DNA of 64,000 bases from assembly GCA_021613535.1 (NCBI GenBank), contig CP075492.1:1-64000 (forward strand). The letters are read 5' to 3'. The position numbers were made by a program, and so were the translations under genes. The DNA comes from Adineta vaga (lineage: Eukaryota > Animalia > Rotifera). Positions 1-62,166 of the stretch are shown here, in pieces; the first letter of the stretch is position 1; each line of letters begins with the position of its first letter. A model generated the notes under the pieces. That model did not search any database. It was given only the letters and a program-made list of their open reading frames with translations, and was not told the origin of the DNA.

Positions 1-1700
1 ACTTGTTAAAATGATAGGAAATAAATTTTGGTGGATAGTCATTCAATAATAGAGTTAATTCAATATGTAATCTTTCTTGATCAAAATCTTCTACATTTGA
101 ACAAAGACGTATTGCTCGAAAAAGAGCACCTTTAATTGTATTACGATGAACATGACGTGGATGATCCGATAAAAATGGAAGAATATACGGTGCAGCTGCT
201 GGTTTATGATAAACATTAGTTCTCAATTGTCCTTGATTATTATGTACTGATACATCAAGAAATTGAGCACTTAATCTTATTGTTTGAGTAATACTAATAT
301 TTTTATCTTTATGATTTGCATGATTGAGTAATGTATTAATTTCATCCGTAGAAAGATTAGCCGTCATAAAAACATCATCAATATATCTATAGAAAGATAT
401 AAGCAAAAAATAGATAGATAGATAGAAAGTTATCCTCTTACCGGCCATATAATTCATTATGAGCTTTTTGATGTTCAATTAATGATTGTTCCCATTTTAA
501 CATATAGATATTAGCTAAAGTCATAGTAAATGGTGATCCCATTGCTCCACCACGAATTTGTTTATAATATTTTCCTTCGTAAACAAAGGAATTTGTATCC
601 AATACTGCATTAGATAATTTCATCAGAGTATCAATTGTCATGCCATGAATTCTTCCATTACTTGCATGCATATTTAAAAATTGTTGTAAAGCAACTAGAG
701 CTCCATCTCTTGGTATCATTGTATACAAATCGGTCACATCAAATGTAATAAAATTTGTTGTTGGTGTTAGACGACCGATACTTTGATACAATGCCAATCG
801 TCGAATAAAATGAATGTCATTAATAAATGTAGTCTGCTTAGTTGCTTGATCAAATATTGGCCGAAGAACTTGATCTAAAAAATGTGATATACCTATGGCT
901 GGTGAATGTATCATGGAGATAATCGGTCTTAATGGTGTACCAATCTAAAAATAATTAAAAATTATATTTTTATTATCAATATATTTTAAATACGATTACT
1001 TTGTGTGGTTTTGGTAGAAAATAAAGATGAGGTAATTCAATTGTTTCAATATTTGGATACATCTTTAGTTTCCATAGATTACGATTAATAGCTTTATTCT
1101 TCAATAATAGAGTTAATAATCCTATAATATGTTGAAAATGATCTCTACATGGATTAATACCATTTTCAATTTCTTGATAAGCTTGAGTTTTTTCCATATA
1201 AGCCAATGATTTATTATGATAACTTTCAACGCTAGCTAAATGAAATACTTTACTTTTATCTGATCTTTGTATGACAATGTTATGTTTATTTCGTATACGT
1301 TTGATATTTTTATATCATTGTGTCTGTTCATATTGAGCGCGCTGCCGTAATAATTTCGGTCGTAATGGTGTTGTATGTGATAAAGTAAAGAGATTCTCAA
1401 TACCATCAAAAAATTCATTGGCTCGTTGATCAGATCCAGAAACGCAATTATCATGAAAACCATCTTTAAAACATTTGACAAGTGTTTCATATTCTTTTGT
1501 AATGATAACATCTACGGATAAATTTGAGAAATGACTTTGACAAGTTGGTATAAAAGGTGGACCATTTGCAAGAAATTCAATATAATTTGATGAAGGAATT
1601 GGAGCTACTTCAATGATTGGTGCTGATAAACGAATATGACTTAGTTTAGTAAAATGATTGCTCCGATGATTGTTGCACCAACCAGTTATTTTTCTTCTAT
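1..1700 (-). pseudogene. Penelope-like (Athena clade) reverse transcriptase ORF2; intron-containing, degenerate, runs off the window start
   Basis: Spliced translation gives PLE RT motifs: LANGPPFIP, IQRSDKSKVF, HLYFLPKPHK^IGTPLRPIIS (intron 945-999), FDVTDLYTMIP, QIRGGAMGSPF, LYGR^YIDDVF (intron 387-441), FLDV, VYHKPAAAPYILPFLSDHPRHV. There is an in-frame stop/frameshift damage around 1100-1320. Confidence 0.93.
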
Positions 1701-5406: not shown

Positions 5407-7774
5407 CCCTTTCAGGACCGGCTTATTTTGAGGAAAAAATACAGTTATAATGTTCTTTAAAATGCTTTATTTTTGTGAGATGTATCAAAAAGAGCATCAA
5501 AAAGCTTTCAAAGTGTGATATTCTTTGAAACAAGTAGGATTGCACAGTGGAACATCACAGTCCGGACAATAAAACCTTGTAACACTCCGTTTTTTCTCCC
5601 GCTTGACTGAATGACTGCAGACGAAACAGCGTTTCTTGACATTAGTGCCAGGAATAAAAGCGATGAAATGACGAGCAGAGAGGCGTAGCGGACAATCGAT
5701 TGGTGGTCTTCCTTTCGTCTGTGGCCGCATTGATCCATATTCTTCAATGAGTTCTCGAGCAAGTTCAAGACGAAATTCCGAAAGTTCGAGATTTTTGTGG
5801 GTTTTTATCTTGTACATGGCATAAGAGTTCTGCACAGTGATATCAAATAAATGAAAAAACAATTTCTTGTACCATTTGATTGTTTTTCTTAGACATTCTG
5901 AGAAACTGGTTTGCATGTCCACTTGGTCCACTGCTCCCATATTTTTGTTATATTGTACAATACAATGAGGTTTCTTGATTTTTTGGCCTGTTTCTCTATC
6001 ATTCTTACCAGTTTCTACCATGACAGATTTGTGCGCGGTAGTAAGCATGTGCACCTCTCTTTTGTCCATCCATTTGAGTGCTAAAAGTTCACCAGTTGTT
6101 TGATATTCCTGTTGACCCTTTGCCAGCTTTCCAAACATTGGCATCCCATTTCTTGTTCTTTTCACAGTTCCACAAGATTTCGTTTTCTCCTCCAGTAATC
6201 TTTCAAATAATGTCGGGCTGGAATACCAATTATCAATGAAGAGTGTATGATTTTTCTTCAAATAATTTTTCATCAATGTTAGTATTACTGAACCTGATAT
6301 TCCAACCTCGGGATAATTGTCAATTTCTGTTTCTGCTCCAGTGTAAACGATGAAGTTCAGAACGAATTTGGTCTCACAGTCGCATAACAGGAAGAGCTTT
6401 ACACCAAAACGATGTCTTTTCGACGGAATGTATTGCTTAAAACTGAGGCGACCTTTCCAAAGCATCAGGCTCTCATCAATACACAAATTTTCCCATGGAA
6501 TTATTGCTTTTCCAAATTTCTTTTTCAAATTTTCGATAATTGGGTGGATCTTTCGTAGTTTGCCTTCTTGCTCTGTGTTATTATCAGCAATGTGAAGATA
6601 TCGCAGAACAGAAAGATACCTGTTCCTTGTGAAAAGCTCGCCGAAAATTGGTGTTGTTATCAGCTTATCCGTTGACCAATAATCTTTTATGCGATTCTTT
6701 TGATTTAATCCCATCAAAATAGTGGTAGCGAAAAAGATATACATTTCTTCCACATTAGTGTCGTACCAGGCGGCAGTTTTTTCAATATTTGGTGTTGCAT
6801 TTTGTTGTTGATAATTGTTAGTTTCTTCAACAATTATTTCCATTAGCTCGTTGTCAAAAAAAGCTTTGAAATAGTCAGATGGATTGTTTCCTTCGATTTC
6901 AAATTCTTCGTTGACACCTGATGCTTTATCGGAAAATTTCAAGTCCTTGAGTTTGAAGCCACACTGACTCCACTTTCTGGGAGCACGTTTTTTCCGAATA
7001 GTCGGTGATGCAATGTCCTTTTCTTCATCTTCTTCACTGGTTGAGGACATATGTAAATCGTCAAATTCTGTTGCTAAGTCTGATTCCGAATCGTCGAAAA
7101 TTTCGTCGATTTCCATTGGATTGAGCTTCTTTTTTCTTGAAGTTGCCATATGTAAATGAAACCTGTTAGTTAGCGTTTTACTAATCGAAATAATTATGTA
7201 TATATAATATTTGATATATAATATATGTTACTTCTGCTTTTATTATAGAAAATCAACAACTATATATACGATTTGAAAAGTTCAACTAGAAGCGAAAAGA
7301 AGAATCTATATGACGTGATGGAAAATCAGTTGACAGAGTACATTTGATCAGATGGAAGAGCATATGATGTCATCATATGTTCATATGGTAGATAACACTG
7401 TGCACATGACGTCATGTATATATGTACGCAAAAGAACGAAAAAAGATATATGATGACGTCATGGCAACAATGGTAATAGTACATATATGAAGACATTGCA
7501 TAGCAAACTGATAAAGTACGAATTGTGAACTCTTTATGTATCTAATTTTTTTGTCAGTATCTCTTTATAACTATCTAATAGATGATGAACGAGAGGAAAA
7601 AATCCATGAAGTATAAATGAGAATAAGAAAAAAGAAAATACTAATAATAACACGGACGTTTAAAACAACATCCACAATATTTACTTCAAAGAAACACGAA
7701 AAAGGTCGAATTTTTACACACAAGACCACATGAAAGCTCAATGGCACTTTAAAGTGCCACCGGTCCCGAAAGGG
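5407..7774 (-). mobile_element. Complete piggyBac DNA transposon
   Basis: TTAA TSDs at 5403-5406 and 7775-7778. TIRs CCCTTTCAGGACCGG (5407-5421) and CCGGTCCCGAAAGGG (7760-7774) match at 14/15. Confidence 0.97.
5497..7149 (-). CDS. piggyBac transposase (PGBD4-like), intact, 550 aa
   Basis: DDD triad contexts CIDESL, FIDNWYSS and MGAVDQVD; YIPSKRHRFGVK; C-terminal Cys-rich domain CFVC...CPDCDVPLCNPTCFKEYH. Confidence 0.96.
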   Translation of the reverse strand: MATSRKKKLNPMEIDEIFDDSESDLATEFDDLHMSSTSEEDEEKDIASPTIRKKRAPRKWSQCGFKLKDLKFSDKASGVNEEFEIEGNNPSDYFKAFFDNELMEIIVEETNNYQQQNATPNIEKTAAWYDTNVEEMYIFFATTILMGLNQKNRIKDYWSTDKLITTPIFGELFTRNRYLSVLRYLHIADNNTEQEGKLRKIHPIIENLKKKFGKAIIPWENLCIDESLMLWKGRLSFKQYIPSKRHRFGVKLFLLCDCETKFVLNFIVYTGAETEIDNYPEVGISGSVILTLMKNYLKKNHTLFIDNWYSSPTLFERLLEEKTKSCGTVKRTRNGMPMFGKLAKGQQEYQTTGELLALKWMDKREVHMLTTAHKSVMVETGKNDRETGQKIKKPHCIVQYNKNMGAVDQVDMQTSFSECLRKTIKWYKKLFFHLFDITVQNSYAMYKIKTHKNLELSEFRLELARELIEEYGSMRPQTKGRPPIDCPLRLSARHFIAFIPGTNVKKRCFVCSHSVKREKKRSVTRFYCPDCDVPLCNPTCFKEYHTLKAF

Positions 7775-10935: not shown

Positions 10936-11035
10936 TTGGTCGTGGTAGCTGTTGTTGGCTTTTCATTCTATATATGAACAAGTTCCATAAAAACATAAAG
11001 CCACCTGATGAGGCCCTTCAGCAAGGCCGAAACCG
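10936..11035 (+). ncRNA. Type III hammerhead ribozyme
   Basis: GUC cleavage triplet 10939-10941; stem I GTGGT/GCCAC; core CTGATGA 11005-11011; stem II GGCC-CTTCAGCAA-GGCC; GAAA 11029-11032; stem III TGGT/ACCG. Confidence 0.8.
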
Positions 11036-11924
11036 CAAACATGCATCTGAAATCAATTTTAATTTGCGTATCTTTAACGCAACAAAGATAGAGAACATAA
11101 TTATTGAATGCTCTCATTCACCAATCACATAATCACCTTTTACACAAGGTAGTTTTTGTTTGAAAAAGTTTGTAAACTTTCTTCTATTAACGCAAACAAT
11201 TAGAAATGCTGCTTTAATTTGATTATTTGGATTCATGATGATCCAATATTTGTTCCATAAAGGATATTATTATAACAGTGACCAGTATCTAGAATGATCA
11301 TATTATCATGAGCAAAATAGATTAACTAATTTGTTTTATTCAGTGTTTATAATTAATATGAGACTTATAAAGAAATTATTATTACTATTATTAAGAGTGT
11401 ACTCAGCCGATGTTTGTTCTGAAGCGTTATTGTATGATTCGATGATATCATCCATATTTTCATTCATCATTGTAATGAAAACGAGATGCGATCGATTTGA
11501 ACAAGAAATAGTTGTTTTTTTATTTCTACTTCGTTGGCTAATTCACCTAGTGATTCTCTTCCCTTAAAGATTACTTTTAATAGTTGATTTCATCCTGGTT
11601 TTTGATAATATGCCATATGTTAATAATGTATAGATGAAAAGATAAATATGTTTGAAATATCTGAAAGAGAAAAGTTTCATATTAGTAAATTGTTAGAATG
11701 GTACTTTCTACAACTAAACACTATGAATTTTATGCAATTACAAAAAAAACAGAAGAGAAATCGAACAACGTCATTTAAGTGTTTAATTGTATGATGTTAG
11801 TAGAGGCTTTGTGTATATTGTATTCGAATTATCTTGAAGGCCGCGACACGGTAATTGATCAAAATGACATGGAAGATAATCGTAATCATATGATTTGATG
11901 ATCTATGATTGTGATAAAGTAATT

Positions 11925-15078: not shown

Positions 15079-16153
15079 TCCGAAATGGGTGTTCAGGAAT
15101 AATAGTAATAATAAACATTCCCATGAATTACATAATTAATAATTTTTAGATATTGAAGTGGAAATGCTCACATGAAAAGGTTGAATATTTGTCTTGTATC
15201 CTGTTCTGAAGTAAACGCAGGTGTAGATATGTCTAGAAAAAGTAAAATAATTGAGAGGTATTTGTGTTCTAATTGGATATTAATTGAAAAGTATTAATTA
15301 ACCTAATTTTTCTATTAGGATGTGAATGTAAATTTGTTTACTCACTGCTTAGATGTTGAAATCAAATTATTTTTTAGTTTTCTGGTAAATGAGTTAGATT
15401 AAGATTGTTTACATATCGTTAACTACGTATTTGTTTGAATTGCTTGTAATTCGTACTGTTTCGTTGTTGAATTTCAAATAAAAAGTTAGCGATGTTTTCA
15501 TTGATCTGAAATAGGTGAAAGTTTTAGCTAGCTGTGACGACAGAGAGTAATGATCGCAAATTTAACATCTATTTGAGTTTATTTAGATTTGATTTCTATC
15601 CAATTATATCTTAAAGTATCCAAACCAACTATGTCATCAAAACGAAACAATTCATTTTACACCAATCAATCAACAACAAAATACTATCCATGTAGTAATA
15701 ATGGTGAAATATAGATCTAATTCAAAAAGCACCCAAAATCAGATCAAAGAATTGGCATACCTAAACAAATGTAAAAGGTGAAAGTTTCCGTAACACATAT
15801 ACCCGCCTCTATATAATCGGACGAATGTAATACAATCATCTCAGAAAATGCCAACCAACGTCACAGCATCACAACCCATTCCAATAAATATACCATGTTA
15901 TTGATAATTCCAAACCAATACCACATAATTCCACTTAATGAATCTTTCACCCAGAAACGTTCACCTTTCTCCTTCTGAAACTTGTACGATTTCCTCACTT
16001 GAATCCTCATTACAACAAAACAACGAAACCTTCTTCTCATTAGTAATACTTTCAAGTGTACACCACTATGTTAACTTTATAAATTTTCATAAATTATGCG
16101 GTATCGTTAGATGTAGCGTATTTTTGAGATGATCGAATAATGAATAAACTCAT

Positions 16154-16215
16154 ATCATCTGAAGAATCTTCTTAGTTGAAGATGAAATCTAGATTATGGT
16201 AGCTAGTACACACCC
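16154..16215 (+). ncRNA. Minimal type I hammerhead followed by ACACCC (retroelement 3' end 1)
   Basis: ATCAT-CTGAAGA-ATCTTC(ttagtt)GAAGAT-GAAA-TCTAGA-TT^ATGGT, then AGCTAGT-ACACACCC. Stem III is the palindrome AATCTAGATT. Confidence 0.85.
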
Positions 16216-16309
16216 ATATTAGACTGAAACAATCTTTTCTGATATCTTCGGATATTTGAAACTGATTTAGTTATTTACTTGTGATTTCCAAAAATCATGA
16301 AGTAATTAT

Positions 16310-16376
16310 TACCATCTGACGATTCCTTTAGCCGGGATGAAATCTAGATTATGGTAGCTAGTACACACCCACACCC
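16310..16376 (+). ncRNA. Minimal type I hammerhead followed by (ACACCC)2 (retroelement 3' end 2)
   Basis: TACCAT-CTGACGA-TTCC(tttagcc)GGGAT-GAAA-TCTAGA-TT^ATGGTA, then the same tail as copy 1 (36-bp direct repeat). Confidence 0.8.
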
Positions 16377-16466
16377 AAAACTACAATGGTTTCATGGAAT
16401 ACAATTCAGTCAGTTAATTCTTTTTCTACTTTTCTACTATAATAATTCAAAATTTCTTTCTATTAG

Positions 16467-16571
16467 ACGATATCAACTGATAATCATGACATAACAGATT
16501 CAACTCCTACATATGATAATTTGCCATCAGCCGATCCACCGAGATATAAAGATTTATATCCTATGGTTTGA
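16467..16571 (+). pseudogene. Last exon of a 5'-truncated ORF ending in a PPxY motif
   Basis: After the TATTAG acceptor: TISTDNHDITDSTPTYDNLPSADPPRYKDLYPMV*. Confidence 0.4.
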
Positions 16572-16756
16572 TCATTTTTACAATTCAACAATTTCTCTTC
16601 AAATTAATTCACTTCTATAACTATCTAATTCCTTTTTTTTCCATAGTCGATAGACCTATTTCACATAATAAAACTCAATGAAGCTGTTTTGTTTAACATT
16701 TCTATATAAATTCCTTTCTTCTTTCTAGATCAATCTCGTCATTCACCGATAGAAAA

Positions 16757-17339
16757 ATGCAATTTCACCGTTATACAAAAATTCTAATAACTCTTTATGC
16801 TCAATTCTATCTTACTAGACATTGTGAAACTCGTGCTCTTATGAATGATACAACAGATCTATCAATCGAACAACTGCTATTATTTCCATCTACATATGAT
16901 CATACAAACGTCGAATGGGATCGAAATCTGAATCTAACTGAAACAACTCAATCAAATTTCCTACATACCATTCACCATGTATCGAACCCAATGCGTAGGA
17001 AAACATTGTACGACAGGTTGTTTGATACAGAGTTCGATTGGTAAGATAGCGACACATTTATTCTCACCCTGATAAAATGAATTTGTGAGAATTAGCTTTC
17101 ATCTCGTTTCACGAATTCATCATGAAATCAATATTAAAAAACTAAAAAGTATTAATTTTCTCCTCATATTTAATTCTTTTTCTAGGCCACGCTATCTTCT
17201 ACTTATCTTCGCCTGCATCGCAAGCCATACTATAGTTGCTTGCTATTGGATATGCAAACATCCAAAAATTCAATATAGAGCCGTATATATGAATGACGAA
17301 AATCAGCAGCCAACAACTAAATTATCAACCACACTATAG
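16757..17339 (+). CDS. Small type I membrane protein (signal-like N-terminus, one TM), 2 exons
   Basis: Exon 16757-17040 joins 17186-17339 through GTAAGA..TCTAG, giving FDW^PRYLLLIFACIASHTIVACYWIC; N-glycosylation sequons NDT and NLT. Confidence 0.6.
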
Positions 17340-17644
17340 ACATTCTTTCAATTCCACTATTTCTCTATACATTAGTTTTTCCTACAAATCCACACCAGTT
17401 AAATGAGAATTTGTTTTAAAAAATCTTTCCTTTCAATCTGATATTCTTACCACGACATAAATTCAATCATTCGTCTCTTTCATTTCAGATAAGACATTAG
17501 AAAATTCATCAACTACAAAATTCTCCTAAAATTTATCCTAATCTTAGGATTAAACTCAAAGCCAATCGAATTTGTTTTGAATTTTAATTGATTAGATTCT
17601 TTGAATTTGATTAATTGGAGTTCTGAATCAGATTTAAGCTACAA

Positions 17645-17688
17645 GCCATCTGATGAGACTGTGAAACTTAGTCGAAACCGGTCATGGC
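17645..17688 (+). ncRNA. Minimal type I hammerhead (retroelement 3' end 3)
   Basis: GCCAT-CTGATGA-GACT(gtgaaactt)AGTC-GAAA-CCGGTC^ATGGC; perfect core, palindromic stem III ACCGGT. Confidence 0.92.
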
Positions 17689-17698
17689 GGGTATTACT

Positions 17699-17793
17699 CA
17701 CACCCACACCCACCCACACCCACTCTCACCCACCCACACCCACACCCACCCACACCCACTCTCACCCACCCACACCCACACCCACCCACACCC
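17699..17793 (+). repeat. Interstitial telomeric-type tract (C-strand of TGTGGG with TGGG/TGAGAG variants), 36-bp higher-order unit, about 2.6 copies
   Basis: CACACC CACACC CACC CACACC CACTCT CACC CACC repeated. Confidence 0.9.
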
Positions 17794-18910
17794 TCAAGAT
17801 GCTAATTCAGATAGTGGTGATGTCAGTGTTCTTCGTGGATATGGTGATGCATCTTTCGCCTCTAAAATATGGTTTCCTGTTGGTCGAGATCCAAGATCAA
17901 TTACTACAGGTGATTTTAATGGTGATGATATTTTAGATATGATTGTTTCTAATAATGGTGACAGTACTGTGAGTATCCTTCTTGGATACGGAAATTGCAG
18001 TTTTAGTACACAAAGAACTTATTCTACTGGTAGTCCTACATCTAATGTAAATGTTGGTGATTTCAACAAAGATAATCAATTGGATGTTGTTGTTGTTATT
18101 AATTATTCTAATAGTATTATGAGCGTTTTTTTGGGTAATGGTGATGGTACTATAGCTAATCGAATTATATATCCAACTGGTCCAAATCCATCTTCTACAG
18201 TTATAGTTGATATAAATAATGATGATCGATTAGATATTCTTCTTGTAGTTCTGGGTGCTACTCAATTTAGTGTTTGTCTTGGTTTTATCAATGAAGCTTT
18301 CGTCAAGAAAACAACATTAATAACGGGTAGTGGTTCTCAACCAAAATCATTAGTTATCAGTGATTTCAATAATGATAATCATTTAGATCTTGCTGTTGCT
18401 AATTCAGGTATCAATCAGATTGGTATTTTTCTCGGTTATGGAAATAATTCCTTTACAGAGCAAATACCATGTTTAAGTGATTATTCTCCAAGATCTATTG
18501 CTATTGGTGATTTTAACAAAGATGGATACATAGACATTGTAGCAGCGAATTCTGATAATGATACTGTTGTCATTTATTTTGGTTTTGGAAATGGTACCTG
18601 TATTGCAAGCGAGAAAGTACTTCAAACTGGTTCAAAAACTAAACCATCTTCGATTGCTGTTGCTATGTTTAATAATGATACTTTCTTAGATCTTATTGTT
18701 GATAATTATGGTAGTAATACTGTCGATGTTTTTCTTGGTTATAATGATGGTCAGTTTGAAGATATGATGAGTTTTGCAATTGGTTATGGAACTCTTCCGT
18801 TTTCGATTCTTCCGGGTGATTTTGATAATGATCAAAGGGTTGATTTTGCAGTAGCCAATGAAGGTACTGATAATTTGAAAATCTTTTTACAAACTTGTAC
18901 ATATTCTTAA
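17794..18910 (+). pseudogene. FG-GAP/VCBS beta-propeller repeat gene, 5'-truncated at the telomeric tract
   Basis: Repeats GDFNGDDILDMIVSN, GDFNKDNQLDVVV, SDFNNDNHLDLAVAN, GDFDNDQRVDFAVAN; intronless; begins mid-repeat (ANSDSGDVSVL). Confidence 0.85.
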
Positions 18911-19365: not shown

Positions 19366-22300
19366 TTAAGAAGAAGCAATATTCTCGTTCGTTACGTCAC
19401 TCAGTTCGATACTTTCGGAACGTTTTGATCGACGAGATTTTCTTCTGGACTTTTTCTGAACAGGAGTTTGATGTTGATGCGATTTTCGTATGAAATAGAT
19501 AATAATCACTGTTAATAGCGATAGAAATGTGACGATTGAAATAACAAGAGATGCAATTAAGAAACTACGATACATAGAAGTATCTTGATCTTTTACTTCT
19601 TCGGGTATCTTTGTATCACATTTTGCTTGATAGGTATTTGTCGCTGAACAGAAAAACATTGTTTGTTTATCTAGTACGGAGGAAGGAGTCAGTTGATTTG
19701 TTAAGATACCTTGTTTTAATGCGGAAGTGTTATCAGATAATTGTCGTTCGAAATCAATATATAATGCATTGGCAGTTAATATGAAATTAGAAGAATTAAA
19801 AAAATTGATCACACTAGTAATATATTCATCTGTGTCTATTGATGAATGTTGTTTGAAAGGAATGAGTTGAATAGATGAGATGTTGATCTGTTGTTGATTG
19901 GAAGGATTTAAGGCAAAAATGAGATCAACCAATAATTGTTGTTGAAGAGAATTGATTGACCATGAATCGATTTTCACAGTTAAAAAAATAGAAAATTGTA
20001 TATAGGAATCGATGATAAATGATGATGAACTAGTAGTAGATTTTAGACCAATCGAAGTAATCGCTGGTGATGAAGTGATTTGTGAATTTAATGTAGTTGA
20101 TAGAGAAGTCAAAGAAATGTTAGAATATAATGATGATGAACTAGTAGTAGATTTTAGACCAGTCGAAGTAATCGGTGATGATGAAGTGATTTGTGAGTTT
20201 AATGTAGTTGATAGAGAAGTCAAAGAAATGTTAGAATATAATGATGATGAACTAGTAGTAGATTTTAGACCAGTCGAAGTAATCGGTGATGATGAAGTGA
20301 TTTGTGAGTTTAATGTAGTTGATAGAGAAGTCAAAGAAATGTTAGAATATAATGATGATGAACTAGTAGTAGATTTTAGACCAGTCGAAGTAATCGGTGA
20401 TGATGAAGTGATTTGTGAGTTTAATGTAGTTGATAGAGAAGTCAAAGAAATGTTAGAATATAATGATGATGAACTAGTAGTAGATTTTAGACCAGTCGAA
20501 GTAATCGGTGATGATGAAGTGATTTGTGAGTTTAATGTAGTTGATAGAGAAGTCAAAGAAATGTTAGAATATAATGATGATGATGATTGTGGACTTGTTA
20601 ATGTAATGTAAGTATTTGAAGTCGATGAGAAAACTGAAGATATGGAAATTGTAGGTAATGATGAATTACTGTATACTATTGTTGGTGAATATTGATTAGT
20701 GATTTCAGTAGTACTTATCGTAATCATCGAACTAGATGTATGTGATGGATCCGTTGATTTCATACTAGTCTTCTCCGTCATCTCAGTCGTTGGAAATGGT
20801 GTCGAAGATGAAATAGTAGTCATATCTATTGGAATAATATTAGTTTCATTTTGTTGAATTTTAACAGTGATCTGATAAATTTGTTGCTTTTGTCGTAAAT
20901 ATTCATTAGGTAATCGATCAAATATATGTAAATCTTTTCTTTGATTATTTTCTCCTAGAAAATGATTAATATCATAGTTAAACCATGTATTCATAGTGAT
21001 ATTTAGACCATCATTCACTCTTATTGATGAAGAAATAATCTTGTAATTTGGATAGATATTCTTTATACGAATATAAATAAAAGATAATGAAGGTATCGAT
21101 AAGATTGGAGTTACGATTACAATGATTTTCATTGTATTAGAATCAATAGATTGATAATCAGCTGTAACATTTAAGACATAATAAACTGGATAAGAAATCG
21201 TTGCATTAGTACTTGTAAAAACTGTATCTGGAATGAATTCACCATCAGGAAAATCATCGACTAAATAATCGCATTTGCCATCATTGAGTTGTCGGTCATA
21301 AATATCTAATGAAACTTGTCGAATTAATGAATGACTTGTTAAAGACATTAACAACGACAATTTTGGATCACCATTAGGATTTTTTTCTGTATACGTAGCA
21401 TTAAATGAATGAAATAATCCTTTCAATGATGCTAGCATTTGCCATGTGATTGATGTCGTTGTAAATGGTTGTAAATTACCCAGATTCCTTGTTAAACTTG
21501 GTGATGATGATAATGTATTATTGACATTCATAGATATAATTTCAAAATTAATTAATAAACCTTTTTCATTTTCAACAATTGTTGGTTGACCACTAGTTAT
21601 TCGAAAATCATTAGCACTACCATAACCACTATTCGTAATCAGCATCGATAAGATAAAAGGTTCAGGTTTAATCTGTTCTTCACCGAGTGAGATAATCAAA
21701 GGATCAGGACCAATAACATATCTATCTAAGAAATAGGCGATATGTAATTGTGCATCGGGCTGAACAAGAATTGTATCAGGTGTTAATGGAATATGTAAGA
21801 ATTCTCCATCTAGATTATACGAAAGATTTCCACCCACTCGATACCATGTTGGTTCAGTTGGTGCTGCCGTAGAATAAGGAATAATAAACCAATTCACACT
21901 ACCTGATGATTTACTTGGTAATTTACCATCACCAGTAATGCCAGTAATAGATCCAGTAAAAGTAGGTTGTCCAATACTGAAATAATGAAGACGATCATGC
22001 TGATTATCGTTATCTTTGATAGTTATATTTAATTGAATGTTCTCGACTGGACTATTTCCAGTATTATCCATTTCTAATTTGGCATCAAAACCTTCTCGCG
22101 TGAAAGTAATTTTTTGTATAATACGAATTTTGACTGTTGCACAAATACCTCGACGTTTTTCACTTTCTTCTTTTGCTTTTTTTAGTTTCTGATGAGTATT
22201 AGAAAAAGCCGCCATAATATCATCATAACCTTTAGTATTAGCATATTTTGTATCTTCTTGATATTGTTTCAAACTAGCTAACCAATCTATTTGTTTTAAA

Positions 22301-35461: not shown

Positions 35462-35509
35462 AAACTAAGACGGATTTCGTCCTTGCTAGAAGGACTCATC
35501 GGGTAGTTT
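35462..35509 (-). ncRNA. Degenerate type I hammerhead
   Basis: AAACTAC-CCGATGA-GTCC(ttctagcaa)GGAC-GAAA-TCCGTC-TTAGTTT; U-to-C change in the core; followed by CTCTCACTCACC. Confidence 0.55.
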
Positions 35510-61960: not shown

Positions 61961-62166
61961 AAATCCGGTGAAATCAGGGTGAAATCAAGGTGAAATCAGG
62001 GTGAAATCCAATGAAATCAGGGTGAAATCAGGGTGAAATCAAGGTGAAATCAGGGTGAAATCCAATGAAATCAGGGTGAAATCCGATGAAATCAAGGTGA
62101 AATCACGTGAAATCAAGGTGAAATCACGTGAAAGCAAGGTGAAATCAGGGTGAAAGACTGAAATCC
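61961..62166 (+). repeat. 10/11-bp tandem array (AGGGTGAAATC variants), about 19 units
   Basis: Directly visible; preceded by the palindrome ACTAGGAC-GG-GTCCTAGT (61942-61959). Confidence 0.92.

Follow-up and report, generated by a model that had tools for sequence, protein, structure and literature searches.

A truncated FG-GAP gene bordered by a telomeric tract and hammerhead-bearing retroelement ends in Adineta vaga: a likely record of chromosome-break healing

Introduction

Bdelloid rotifers are animals known for surviving massive DNA breakage, and a chromosome that has lost its end raises the question of how such an end is made stable again. We address this question at a locus of Adineta vaga in which the 3′ fragment of an FG-GAP/VCBS-repeat gene is preceded by a short linker, a tract of telomeric repeats and three retroelement units (A, B and C, from the outside inwards), each ending in a hammerhead ribozyme (HHR) motif. 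The locus lies 16-19 kb inward from the left end of the chromosome-scale contig C3 (CP075492.1), which measures 20.35 Mb in a haploid assembly of six contigs and 100.8 Mb (GCA_021613535.1). The stretch analyzed, hereafter the window, consists of the first 64,000 nucleotides of this contig (C3:1-64000).

The telomeric repeat of A. vaga is (TGTGGG)n, and neotelomeres and Athena fragments have been found at experimental breakpoints in this species (PMC13564844). The RNAs of Athena/Terminon retroelements end in a hammerhead beside (ACACCC)n or (TCACCC)n and pair with G-rich overhangs; reverse transcription then proceeds from the chromosome end, and the copies, usually 5′-truncated, form head-to-tail arrays beside exposed host genes (PMC6431247, PMC8557442, PMC5537684). 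The kind of event considered here has therefore already been published for A. vaga, and the locus is a well-resolved further instance of it; what is new is the stereotyped linker that joins tract and gene. The coordinates of all features are given in Table 1.

Table 1. Features of the window (C3:1-64000)
Feature	Position	Strand	Remarks
RT fragment	1-914	-	reverse transcriptase (RT); runs off contig start; typical RT motifs; apparent intron or frameshift interruption
piggyBac-type transposase ORF	5497-7149	-	intact, 550 codons; DDE_Tnp_1_7 E=1.9e-89 and zf-Tnp_2
Unit A	15696-16215	+	~520-bp retroelement 3′ unit; ends in HHR-A and ACACACCC
HHR-A	16152-16202	+	minimal type-I hammerhead; core CUGAAGA/GAAA; predicted cut between 16195 and 16196
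Unit A tail	16208-16215	+	ACACACCC; 1.3 reverse-complement telomeric repeats
Unit B	16216-16376	+	discrete 161-bp unit with HHR-B and tail; 81-87% identity to other copies
HHR-B	16309-16357	+	core CUGACGA/GAAA; loop TCTAGA; predicted cut between 16350 and 16351
Unit B tail	16363-16376	+	ACACACCCACACCC; abuts truncation point of unit C
Unit C	16377-17698	+	1.32-kb 3′ part of a longer element; ends in HHR-C and a 16-nt spacer
HHR-C	17643-17690	+	core CUGAUGA/GAAA; predicted cut between 17683 and 17684
408-codon open frame	17684-18910	+	ATG inside HHR-C; through tract (THTHP...) into gene fragment
Telomeric tract	17699-17793	+	C-strand, 95 bp, degenerate (ACACCC/ACCC/TCTCACCC)
Linker	17794-17801	+	TCAAGATG, 8 nt, between tract and gene; unmatched by C1 paralog
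FG-GAP/VCBS-repeat gene, 3′ fragment	17802-18910	+	last ~368 codons and stop

Results and Discussion

The FG-GAP gene is cut inside a repeat unit

The gene fragment matched the Pfam families FG-GAP_3 (E=4.6e-43, 146.1 bits against a cut-off of 26.9, in seven stretches) and FG-GAP (66.2 bits). It belongs to a large intronless family of the A. vaga genome whose open frames of ~1400-1470 codons have FG-GAP repeats ahead of the junction point; the window copy aligned solely to the last ~368 codons of these paralogs, through the stop. The closest of them is a ~1456-codon ORF at 12.94 Mb of contig C1, to the C-terminus of which the fragment has 68% amino acid and 77.8% nucleotide identity. Nucleotide homology to this paralog starts at 17802; opposite ...HPQDANSDSGDVSVLRG in the window the paralog has ...DILVTNSDSNDVSVLLG, which places the junction inside a repeat unit. 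A first-pass annotation, made from the sequence alone, had described the gene as beginning mid-repeat beside a 95-bp tract and had concluded that the chromosome broke within it. The first point was reproduced exactly, and the second is supported by the truncation relative to the full-length paralogs and by the left-telomere orientation of the tract.

Neither the missing 5′ part nor any other FG-GAP segment was found in the 64-kb window. The C1 paralog showed no synteny with the window and therefore cannot serve as an intact allele. Public short-read evidence, drawn from Logan contigs only, contained one unbranched unitig, recovered in three independent studies, that extends from 19060 across the gene and 28 nt into the tract, which supports this junction and argues against a second allele with an intact FG-GAP gene.

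An uninterrupted frame of 408 codons starts from an ATG at 17684, as would be expected if the THTHP-rich start were the normal beginning of a functional short FG-GAP gene. At the junction point, however, the paralogs carry FG-GAP repeats, and none of them has a THTHP start, a check that the first-pass annotation had named. The supposed N-terminus is telomeric repeat DNA containing a 36-bp duplication of 100% identity, its ATG lies inside a hammerhead, and the public contigs gave no sign of expression of the frame; contigs of run X17, guessed to be RNA, matched other copies or paralogs, not this locus. We find a functional short gene scarcely credible. The reading of the frame through the tract is most simply chance, at about one in three, since stop codons are absent from all frames of the tract.

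Another possibility is that the fragment is a 5′-truncated mRNA retrocopy, that is, a host gene captured in a Terminon-like chain and not a resident stump. Capture of host genes between neighboring Terminons has been reported (PMC6431247, PMC8557442, PMC5537684) and would be expected to leave the same geometry, with the sense strand, a missing 5′ end and telomeric repeats at the truncation; since the gene family is intronless, the absence of introns is uninformative either way. Against this origin, neither a poly(A) run nor a telomeric tract nor the end of an element is present downstream of the stop, and the fragment continues straight into 45 kb of gene-bearing DNA with no further telomeric tract and with ordinary large genes, among them a convergent EGF/TIG gene of >3,600 codons on the opposite strand. 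We consider a retrocopy very unlikely.

The tract has the polarity of a left telomere

The 95-bp tract presents the C-strand on the plus strand, the polarity expected of a left telomere, at 17.7 kb from the contig start. It consists of 2.6 copies of a 36-bp unit at 100% identity, and the lack of a single difference between the units indicates that the tract owes some of its length to a recent tandem duplication. Because the tails of other family-C copies measure just 8-24 nt, most of the tract was probably not encoded by the element, or was duplicated later. In the 64-kb window we found no telomeric tract besides those following the three hammerheads, and no G-strand partner tract.

Three hammerheads precede telomeric repeats

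A search of the 64 kb with a hammerhead pattern (CTGANGA, gap, GAAA, gap, T-N-ATGG) returned exactly three matches, at 16159, 16316 and 17650, all on the plus strand, with a chance expectation of 0.05. In HHR-A, helices I and II comprise 6 bp each and helix III a single base pair with the palindromic loop TCTAGA, and in HHR-C the corresponding values are 5 bp, 5 bp and 1 bp, with the loop CCGG. The nucleotide H17 is U, U and C in HHR-A, HHR-B and HHR-C, respectively. The first-pass annotation had placed a perfect hammerhead 10 nt before the tract and two more hammerhead-plus-ACACCC ends to its left on the same strand. Helix I of HHR-C indeed ends at 17688, 10 nt ahead of the tract, and both further ends were recovered with their tails (Table 1); the term "perfect" holds for HHR-A and HHR-C but not for HHR-B, which has a U:U mismatch at the first pair of helix II, beside the core, where the family consensus has A:U (L033 copy). 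HHR-A is chimeric: up to GAAA it resembles the 95%-identity family, whose members have a CCGG loop, and the 36 nt at 16181-16216 are identical to HHR-B.

We built a covariance model (R1) from an alignment of 15 copies, comprising the three of the window and those at 12 other loci of the same genome, in all of which the core is conserved. The window copies scored 66.8 (HHR-C), 60.2 (HHR-A) and 53.9 bits (HHR-B). In this alignment 93.4% of cells were paired in the expected fold, compared with 20-55% when the partners were slid. Both sides changed in nine of the 15 pairs (seven of 11 in helices I and II), and none of 500 shuffles matched the observed pairing score. The pair A15.1:U16.1 was invariant across the 15 copies, and the loops (CCGG, CGCG, CTAG and TCTAGA) were all palindromic. 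This covariation supports the hammerhead fold. Minimum free energy folding of the single hammerheads gave the expected helices I and II, with z values of only -0.5 to -0.8, which are uninformative at a length of 50 nt. No Rfam family reached its gathering score in the window, the best match being Hammerhead_3 at 16.3 bits against a gathering score of 48.5, for HHR-C only; the Rfam models expect a longer helix III. HHR-A, HHR-B and HHR-C are minimal type-I hammerheads of the kind found in metazoans and Penelope-like elements (PLEs), and are predicted to be self-cleaving.

Genome-wide, model R1 matched at least 128 sites, many of them near contig ends; 150 candidates were scored, so that this count is a lower bound. 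A pattern of hammerhead plus CCC at fixed spacing was too strict, giving 13 matches and missing the window's own copies. Within 3-11 nt, (A/T)CACCC units followed all 15 sampled hammerheads, in tracts of 8-140 nt. In the window these units begin after a spacer of 5-7 nt, counted from the end of the 7 bases that were scored as helix I, or of 10-16 nt from the cut.

Further hammerhead-like sequences were also observed. One at 10998-11049 (+) has the core CTGATGAG ... CGAAAC and a GGCC/GGCC helix II, scores 14.6 bits with model R1 and is without telomeric repeats. Another, a degenerate relic at 35462-35509 (-), reads CCGATGAG ... GAAA (27.6 bits, E=2e-6) and is followed by CTCACTCACC; lying 35 kb from the contig start, it may represent an old Athena-type end of opposite orientation. 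On contig C4, two strong matches (2714-2760 and 5525-5571, both minus) lie 3-6 kb from the left end, on the strand opposite to the polarity expected there.

The units to the left are Athena/Terminon-type 3′ ends

Unit C is 85-89% identical to copies at 18.30 Mb of contig C3 and 13.57 Mb of contig C6. Upstream of the point matching 16377, these two copies and a third one continue with sequence that they share with one another, and unit C is thus 5′-truncated, as the first-pass annotation had said of this 1.3-kb unit. Public contigs contain loose ends from longer family-C copies at 16377.

Unit A is 94-96% identical to copies at five other loci (L033 and L039-L042). It starts at one shared base in the window, L039 and L042, whose flanks are unrelated, and other copies extend >700 bp further upstream; the shared start could be an internal start site or mark a short subfamily. 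The 5′ end of unit B is likewise fixed, directly after ...CCC, in the window and at L032, L033/L040, L034 and L035. Moreover, the junction between A and B recurs with an identical B start at L032, L033/L040 and L034. Because these 5′ ends are common to independent copies, units A and B look like short, discrete, non-autonomous units and not random truncations. These distal units, short, discrete and structured, may ride on Athena machinery. Taken together, the units to the left of the tract correspond to Athena/Terminon-type 3′ ends in the published orientation, in agreement with the earlier reading.

Two additional observations concern these units. Unit B contains a conserved hairpin with a TTCG cap at 16240-16262, whose stem varies among the L033, L034 and L035 copies yet stays paired, as judged by eye, which suggests a structured small RNA beyond the hammerhead. 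For unit A, a 1151-nt contig from run X17, guessed to be RNA, represents a copy of the family from another locus, with 16 differences over 15706-16215, and the unit A family may be transcribed.

A stereotyped linker joins tract and gene

The first-pass annotation had made no mention of the 8-nt linker TCAAGATG. The 13-mer formed by CACCC and this linker has 578 exact copies in the genome, and its reversed control has 0. Many other loci also show the linker, complete or as a prefix, after a C-strand tract, and at some of them it extends to TCAAGATGGT. A tally was made by hand over the first 100 tract-type ends in the contig 1 listing, all of them with a base other than A after CCACACCC. Among these 100, the counts were TCA 37, TCAA 28, TCAAG 18, TCAAGA 17, TCAAGAT 15, TCAAGATG 9, +G 5 and +T 3. 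Of the first 100 sites listed for the complete 8-mer, 47 continue with G and 26 with G and then T. At L064, a truncated family-C copy, a short linker prefix overlaps the element's own bases, which fits alignment by microhomology. Among loci selected for their tracts, the linker was present without a hammerhead nearby, indicating that it goes with the tract and not with Athena tails.

The nested series of prefixes suggests copying from a fixed RNA with variable start positions. One candidate is the RNA that templates bdelloid telomeric repeats: the linker would be its imprint, the region just 3′ of the template being copied when synthesis starts on a non-telomeric 3′ end. We advance this idea tentatively, rating it somewhat below an even chance; alternatively, the linker could derive from a common 3′ extension of Athena-type RNAs. 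Whichever RNA is the source, the linker favors synthesis from a template at the broken end of the gene over ligation of a ready-made telomeric fragment.

If the imprint were real, the telomerase RNA would carry ACACCC repeats followed by UCAAGAUGGU, and the motif would provide a direct handle on the rotifer telomerase RNA. Every CCC/TCAAG... junction would then mark de novo telomere formation, with 578 exact 13-mers and ~2,500 tract ends above background, and past healing events could be mapped. Head-to-head pairs of tracts would in that case represent double-strand breaks of which both ends were healed and later rejoined.

Two other sources of the linker were rejected. It is not a high-copy transposon end, as sequences diverge right after 8-12 nt, and it is not the bdelloid spliced leader, the sequence of which ends differently. 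A full-text literature search with the linker string returned nothing relevant, and the linker is unmentioned in the Athena/Terminon literature cited here (PMC6431247, PMC8557442, PMC5537684).

Head-to-head pairs made up most of the long interstitial tracts sampled (L014, L023, L011, L016, L007, L026, L009, L010, L005, L020, L027 and L030). They consist of a G-strand tract, a 13-40-nt spacer and a C-strand tract, with linker-type junctions (CTTGA/GGG... and ...CCC/TCAAG) on the outer sides, and each such pair looks like two healed ends joined.

A probable terminal break, healing and retroelement extension

What is directly observed is that the gene is truncated, that the tract has the orientation of a left telomere, that the units end in hammerheads and ACACCC repeats, that unit C lacks its 5′ part and that the locus is subterminal. 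We consider it likely that these features record a terminal break, its healing, and subsequent extension by telomere-attaching retroelements of the Athena/Terminon type. All DNA distal to codon ~1090 of the ~1450-codon FG-GAP gene would have been lost, and the exposed 3′ end would have gained G-strand telomeric repeats, preceded by the short linker (CATCTTGA on the G strand). A family-C Athena/Terminon-type RNA could then have paired with the short G-rich end through its 3′ (ACACCC)n tail and been copied over 1.3 kb by reverse transcription until synthesis ended. Units B and A would have followed head-to-tail in one or two more rounds, possibly by a template jump in which synthesis, having reached the 5′ end of one RNA, went on at the ACACCC 3′ end of another. 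The order of these events, the enzymes and priming by base pairing are what we infer. The same layout of hammerhead, ACACCC, linker and unrelated or gene sequence occurs at other loci, for example next to a TPR-like frame at L041. The identity of each unit to its closest relatives (up to 89% for C, up to 87% for B and 95-96% for most of A) is loosely consistent with an order in which the proximal unit is the oldest.

The first-pass annotation had counted at least three extensions, which is more than the locus supports. Since A and B share 36 identical nucleotides and their junction recurs elsewhere, they need not be independent additions: two additions are shown and a third is possible. It is equally possible that A and B entered as a single partial-tandem event by template jumping, an arrangement usual for PLEs (PMC8557442), or that a new RNA was primed by homology on an eroded older hammerhead. 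The claim that the old telomere had been internalized is only partly apt: the tract remains in a subterminal position, and the 15.7 kb of DNA further out does not form a chain.

Several points weigh against a terminal break followed by successive attachments. Telomeric repeats were not found at the very start of contig C3, and the outer 15.7 kb, to the left of 15696, is a mosaic with no continued head-to-tail chain on the plus strand. The 5′ end of unit A (15696-15706) lacks a telomeric repeat, as do its counterparts at L039 and L042. The very short tracts (8-20 nt) found between hammerhead tails and linker elsewhere are poorly explained by attachment to a telomere that was already mature. Neither the units nor the 8 kb upstream of a longer family-C copy (L068) yielded an Athena RT; this upstream stretch holds ORFs for a PIF1 helicase, Exo_endo_phos_2 and a weak OTU-like match. 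Terminons have been reported to bear accessory genes of various kinds and to measure up to 40 kb (PMC6431247, PMC8557442, PMC5537684). Finally, for the junctions farther left than the tract the evidence is the assembly itself; the public contigs break at repeats throughout 15.4-17.8 kb, and the tract/gene junction is the only one that they confirm.

This last point, together with the multi-copy nature of units A-C, is what a repeat-driven mis-join at the tract or between units would predict. Such an assembly artefact nevertheless seems highly improbable to us, given that hammerhead, spacer, tract and linker stand in a biologically expected order and orientation that recurs at many loci, and that the gene/tract junction is unbranched in three independent data sets.

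The mosaic outer DNA would also fit a further explanation, in which an internal double-strand break in the gene was repaired with a telomeric fragment from another chromosome end already bearing Athena-type units, by capture, recombination or break-induced replication. For A. vaga it has been proposed that an Athena-bearing region was acquired from another telomere through break-induced replication (PMC2861651), and many tracts in the genome are interstitial, many of them head-to-head. The present locus, however, is subterminal with left-end polarity, the window contains no G-strand partner tract, and a linker common to hundreds of tract ends points to templated synthesis and not ligation. We therefore regard repair of an internal break as unlikely.

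Read as a healed terminal break, the locus is a compact, base-level record of gene stump, telomere seed and retroelement extension, and of how bdelloids stabilize a broken chromosome. It lends the published Athena/Terminon model support from a chromosome-scale assembly, and it indicates that very short telomeric seeds would be enough for attachment.

Comparison with known systems

With Athena/Terminon elements, which are endonuclease-deficient PLEs, the window units share a hammerhead directly upstream of short (ACACCC)n/(TCACCC)n, 3′ ends that face the centromere, and 5′-truncated head-to-tail subtelomeric copies attached beside exposed or truncated host genes; all of them are on the plus strand, within 18 kb of the contig start. 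They differ in that no Athena RT was found in or next to them, and in the fixed 5′ ends of A (~520 bp) and B (161 bp). Compared with metazoan and PLE hammerheads (PMC4209133), the folds agree in helix I (5-7 bp), helix II (4-6 bp), the core CUGANGA...GAAA and a helix III of 1 bp with a palindromic 4-6-nt loop, and are predicted to act as dimers. Those of the window differ in lying 10-16 nt upstream of telomeric repeats and in scoring below Rfam gathering, and their cleavage is predicted.

The Drosophila elements HeT-A, TART and TAHRE are non-LTR retrotransposons with poly(A) tails in a telomerase-less host. They too extend and heal broken ends as 5′-truncated head-to-tail arrays with 3′ ends toward the centromere; in A. 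vaga, by contrast, telomerase-type repeats coexist with hammerhead/ACACCC tails. De novo telomere addition heals chromosomes in yeast, ciliates, nematodes, Plasmodium and mammals. The locus resembles such additions, including the A. vaga neotelomeres (PMC13564844), in that the gene is cut at an arbitrary internal point and joined directly to end-proximal repeats, but here a fixed non-telomeric linker precedes the repeats and the new end was extended by retroelements, not only by telomerase. The rodent TERC-ITS loci (PMC2246262) number 14 in mouse, including a separate 3′-domain fragment, whereas in A. vaga hundreds of junctions carry one linker, putatively templated by an RNA.

Other features of the window

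The outer 15.7 kb contains a minus-strand RT fragment, a piggyBac transposase, ORFs without a family match and the different hammerhead at ~11000. A Pfam scan of unit C and the 15 kb to the left gave the piggyBac transposase as its sole match, and a 158-codon piece of the RT fragment (window 1-914) had no Pfam match. To the right of the gene fragment, a 111-bp tandem repeat (5.1 copies, 99% identity) at 20018-20583 lies inside a 1168-codon minus-strand ORF and encodes Ser/Thr-rich repeats. An 11-bp tandem array of GGTGAAATCAG, with ~17.6 copies, occupies 61967-62155.

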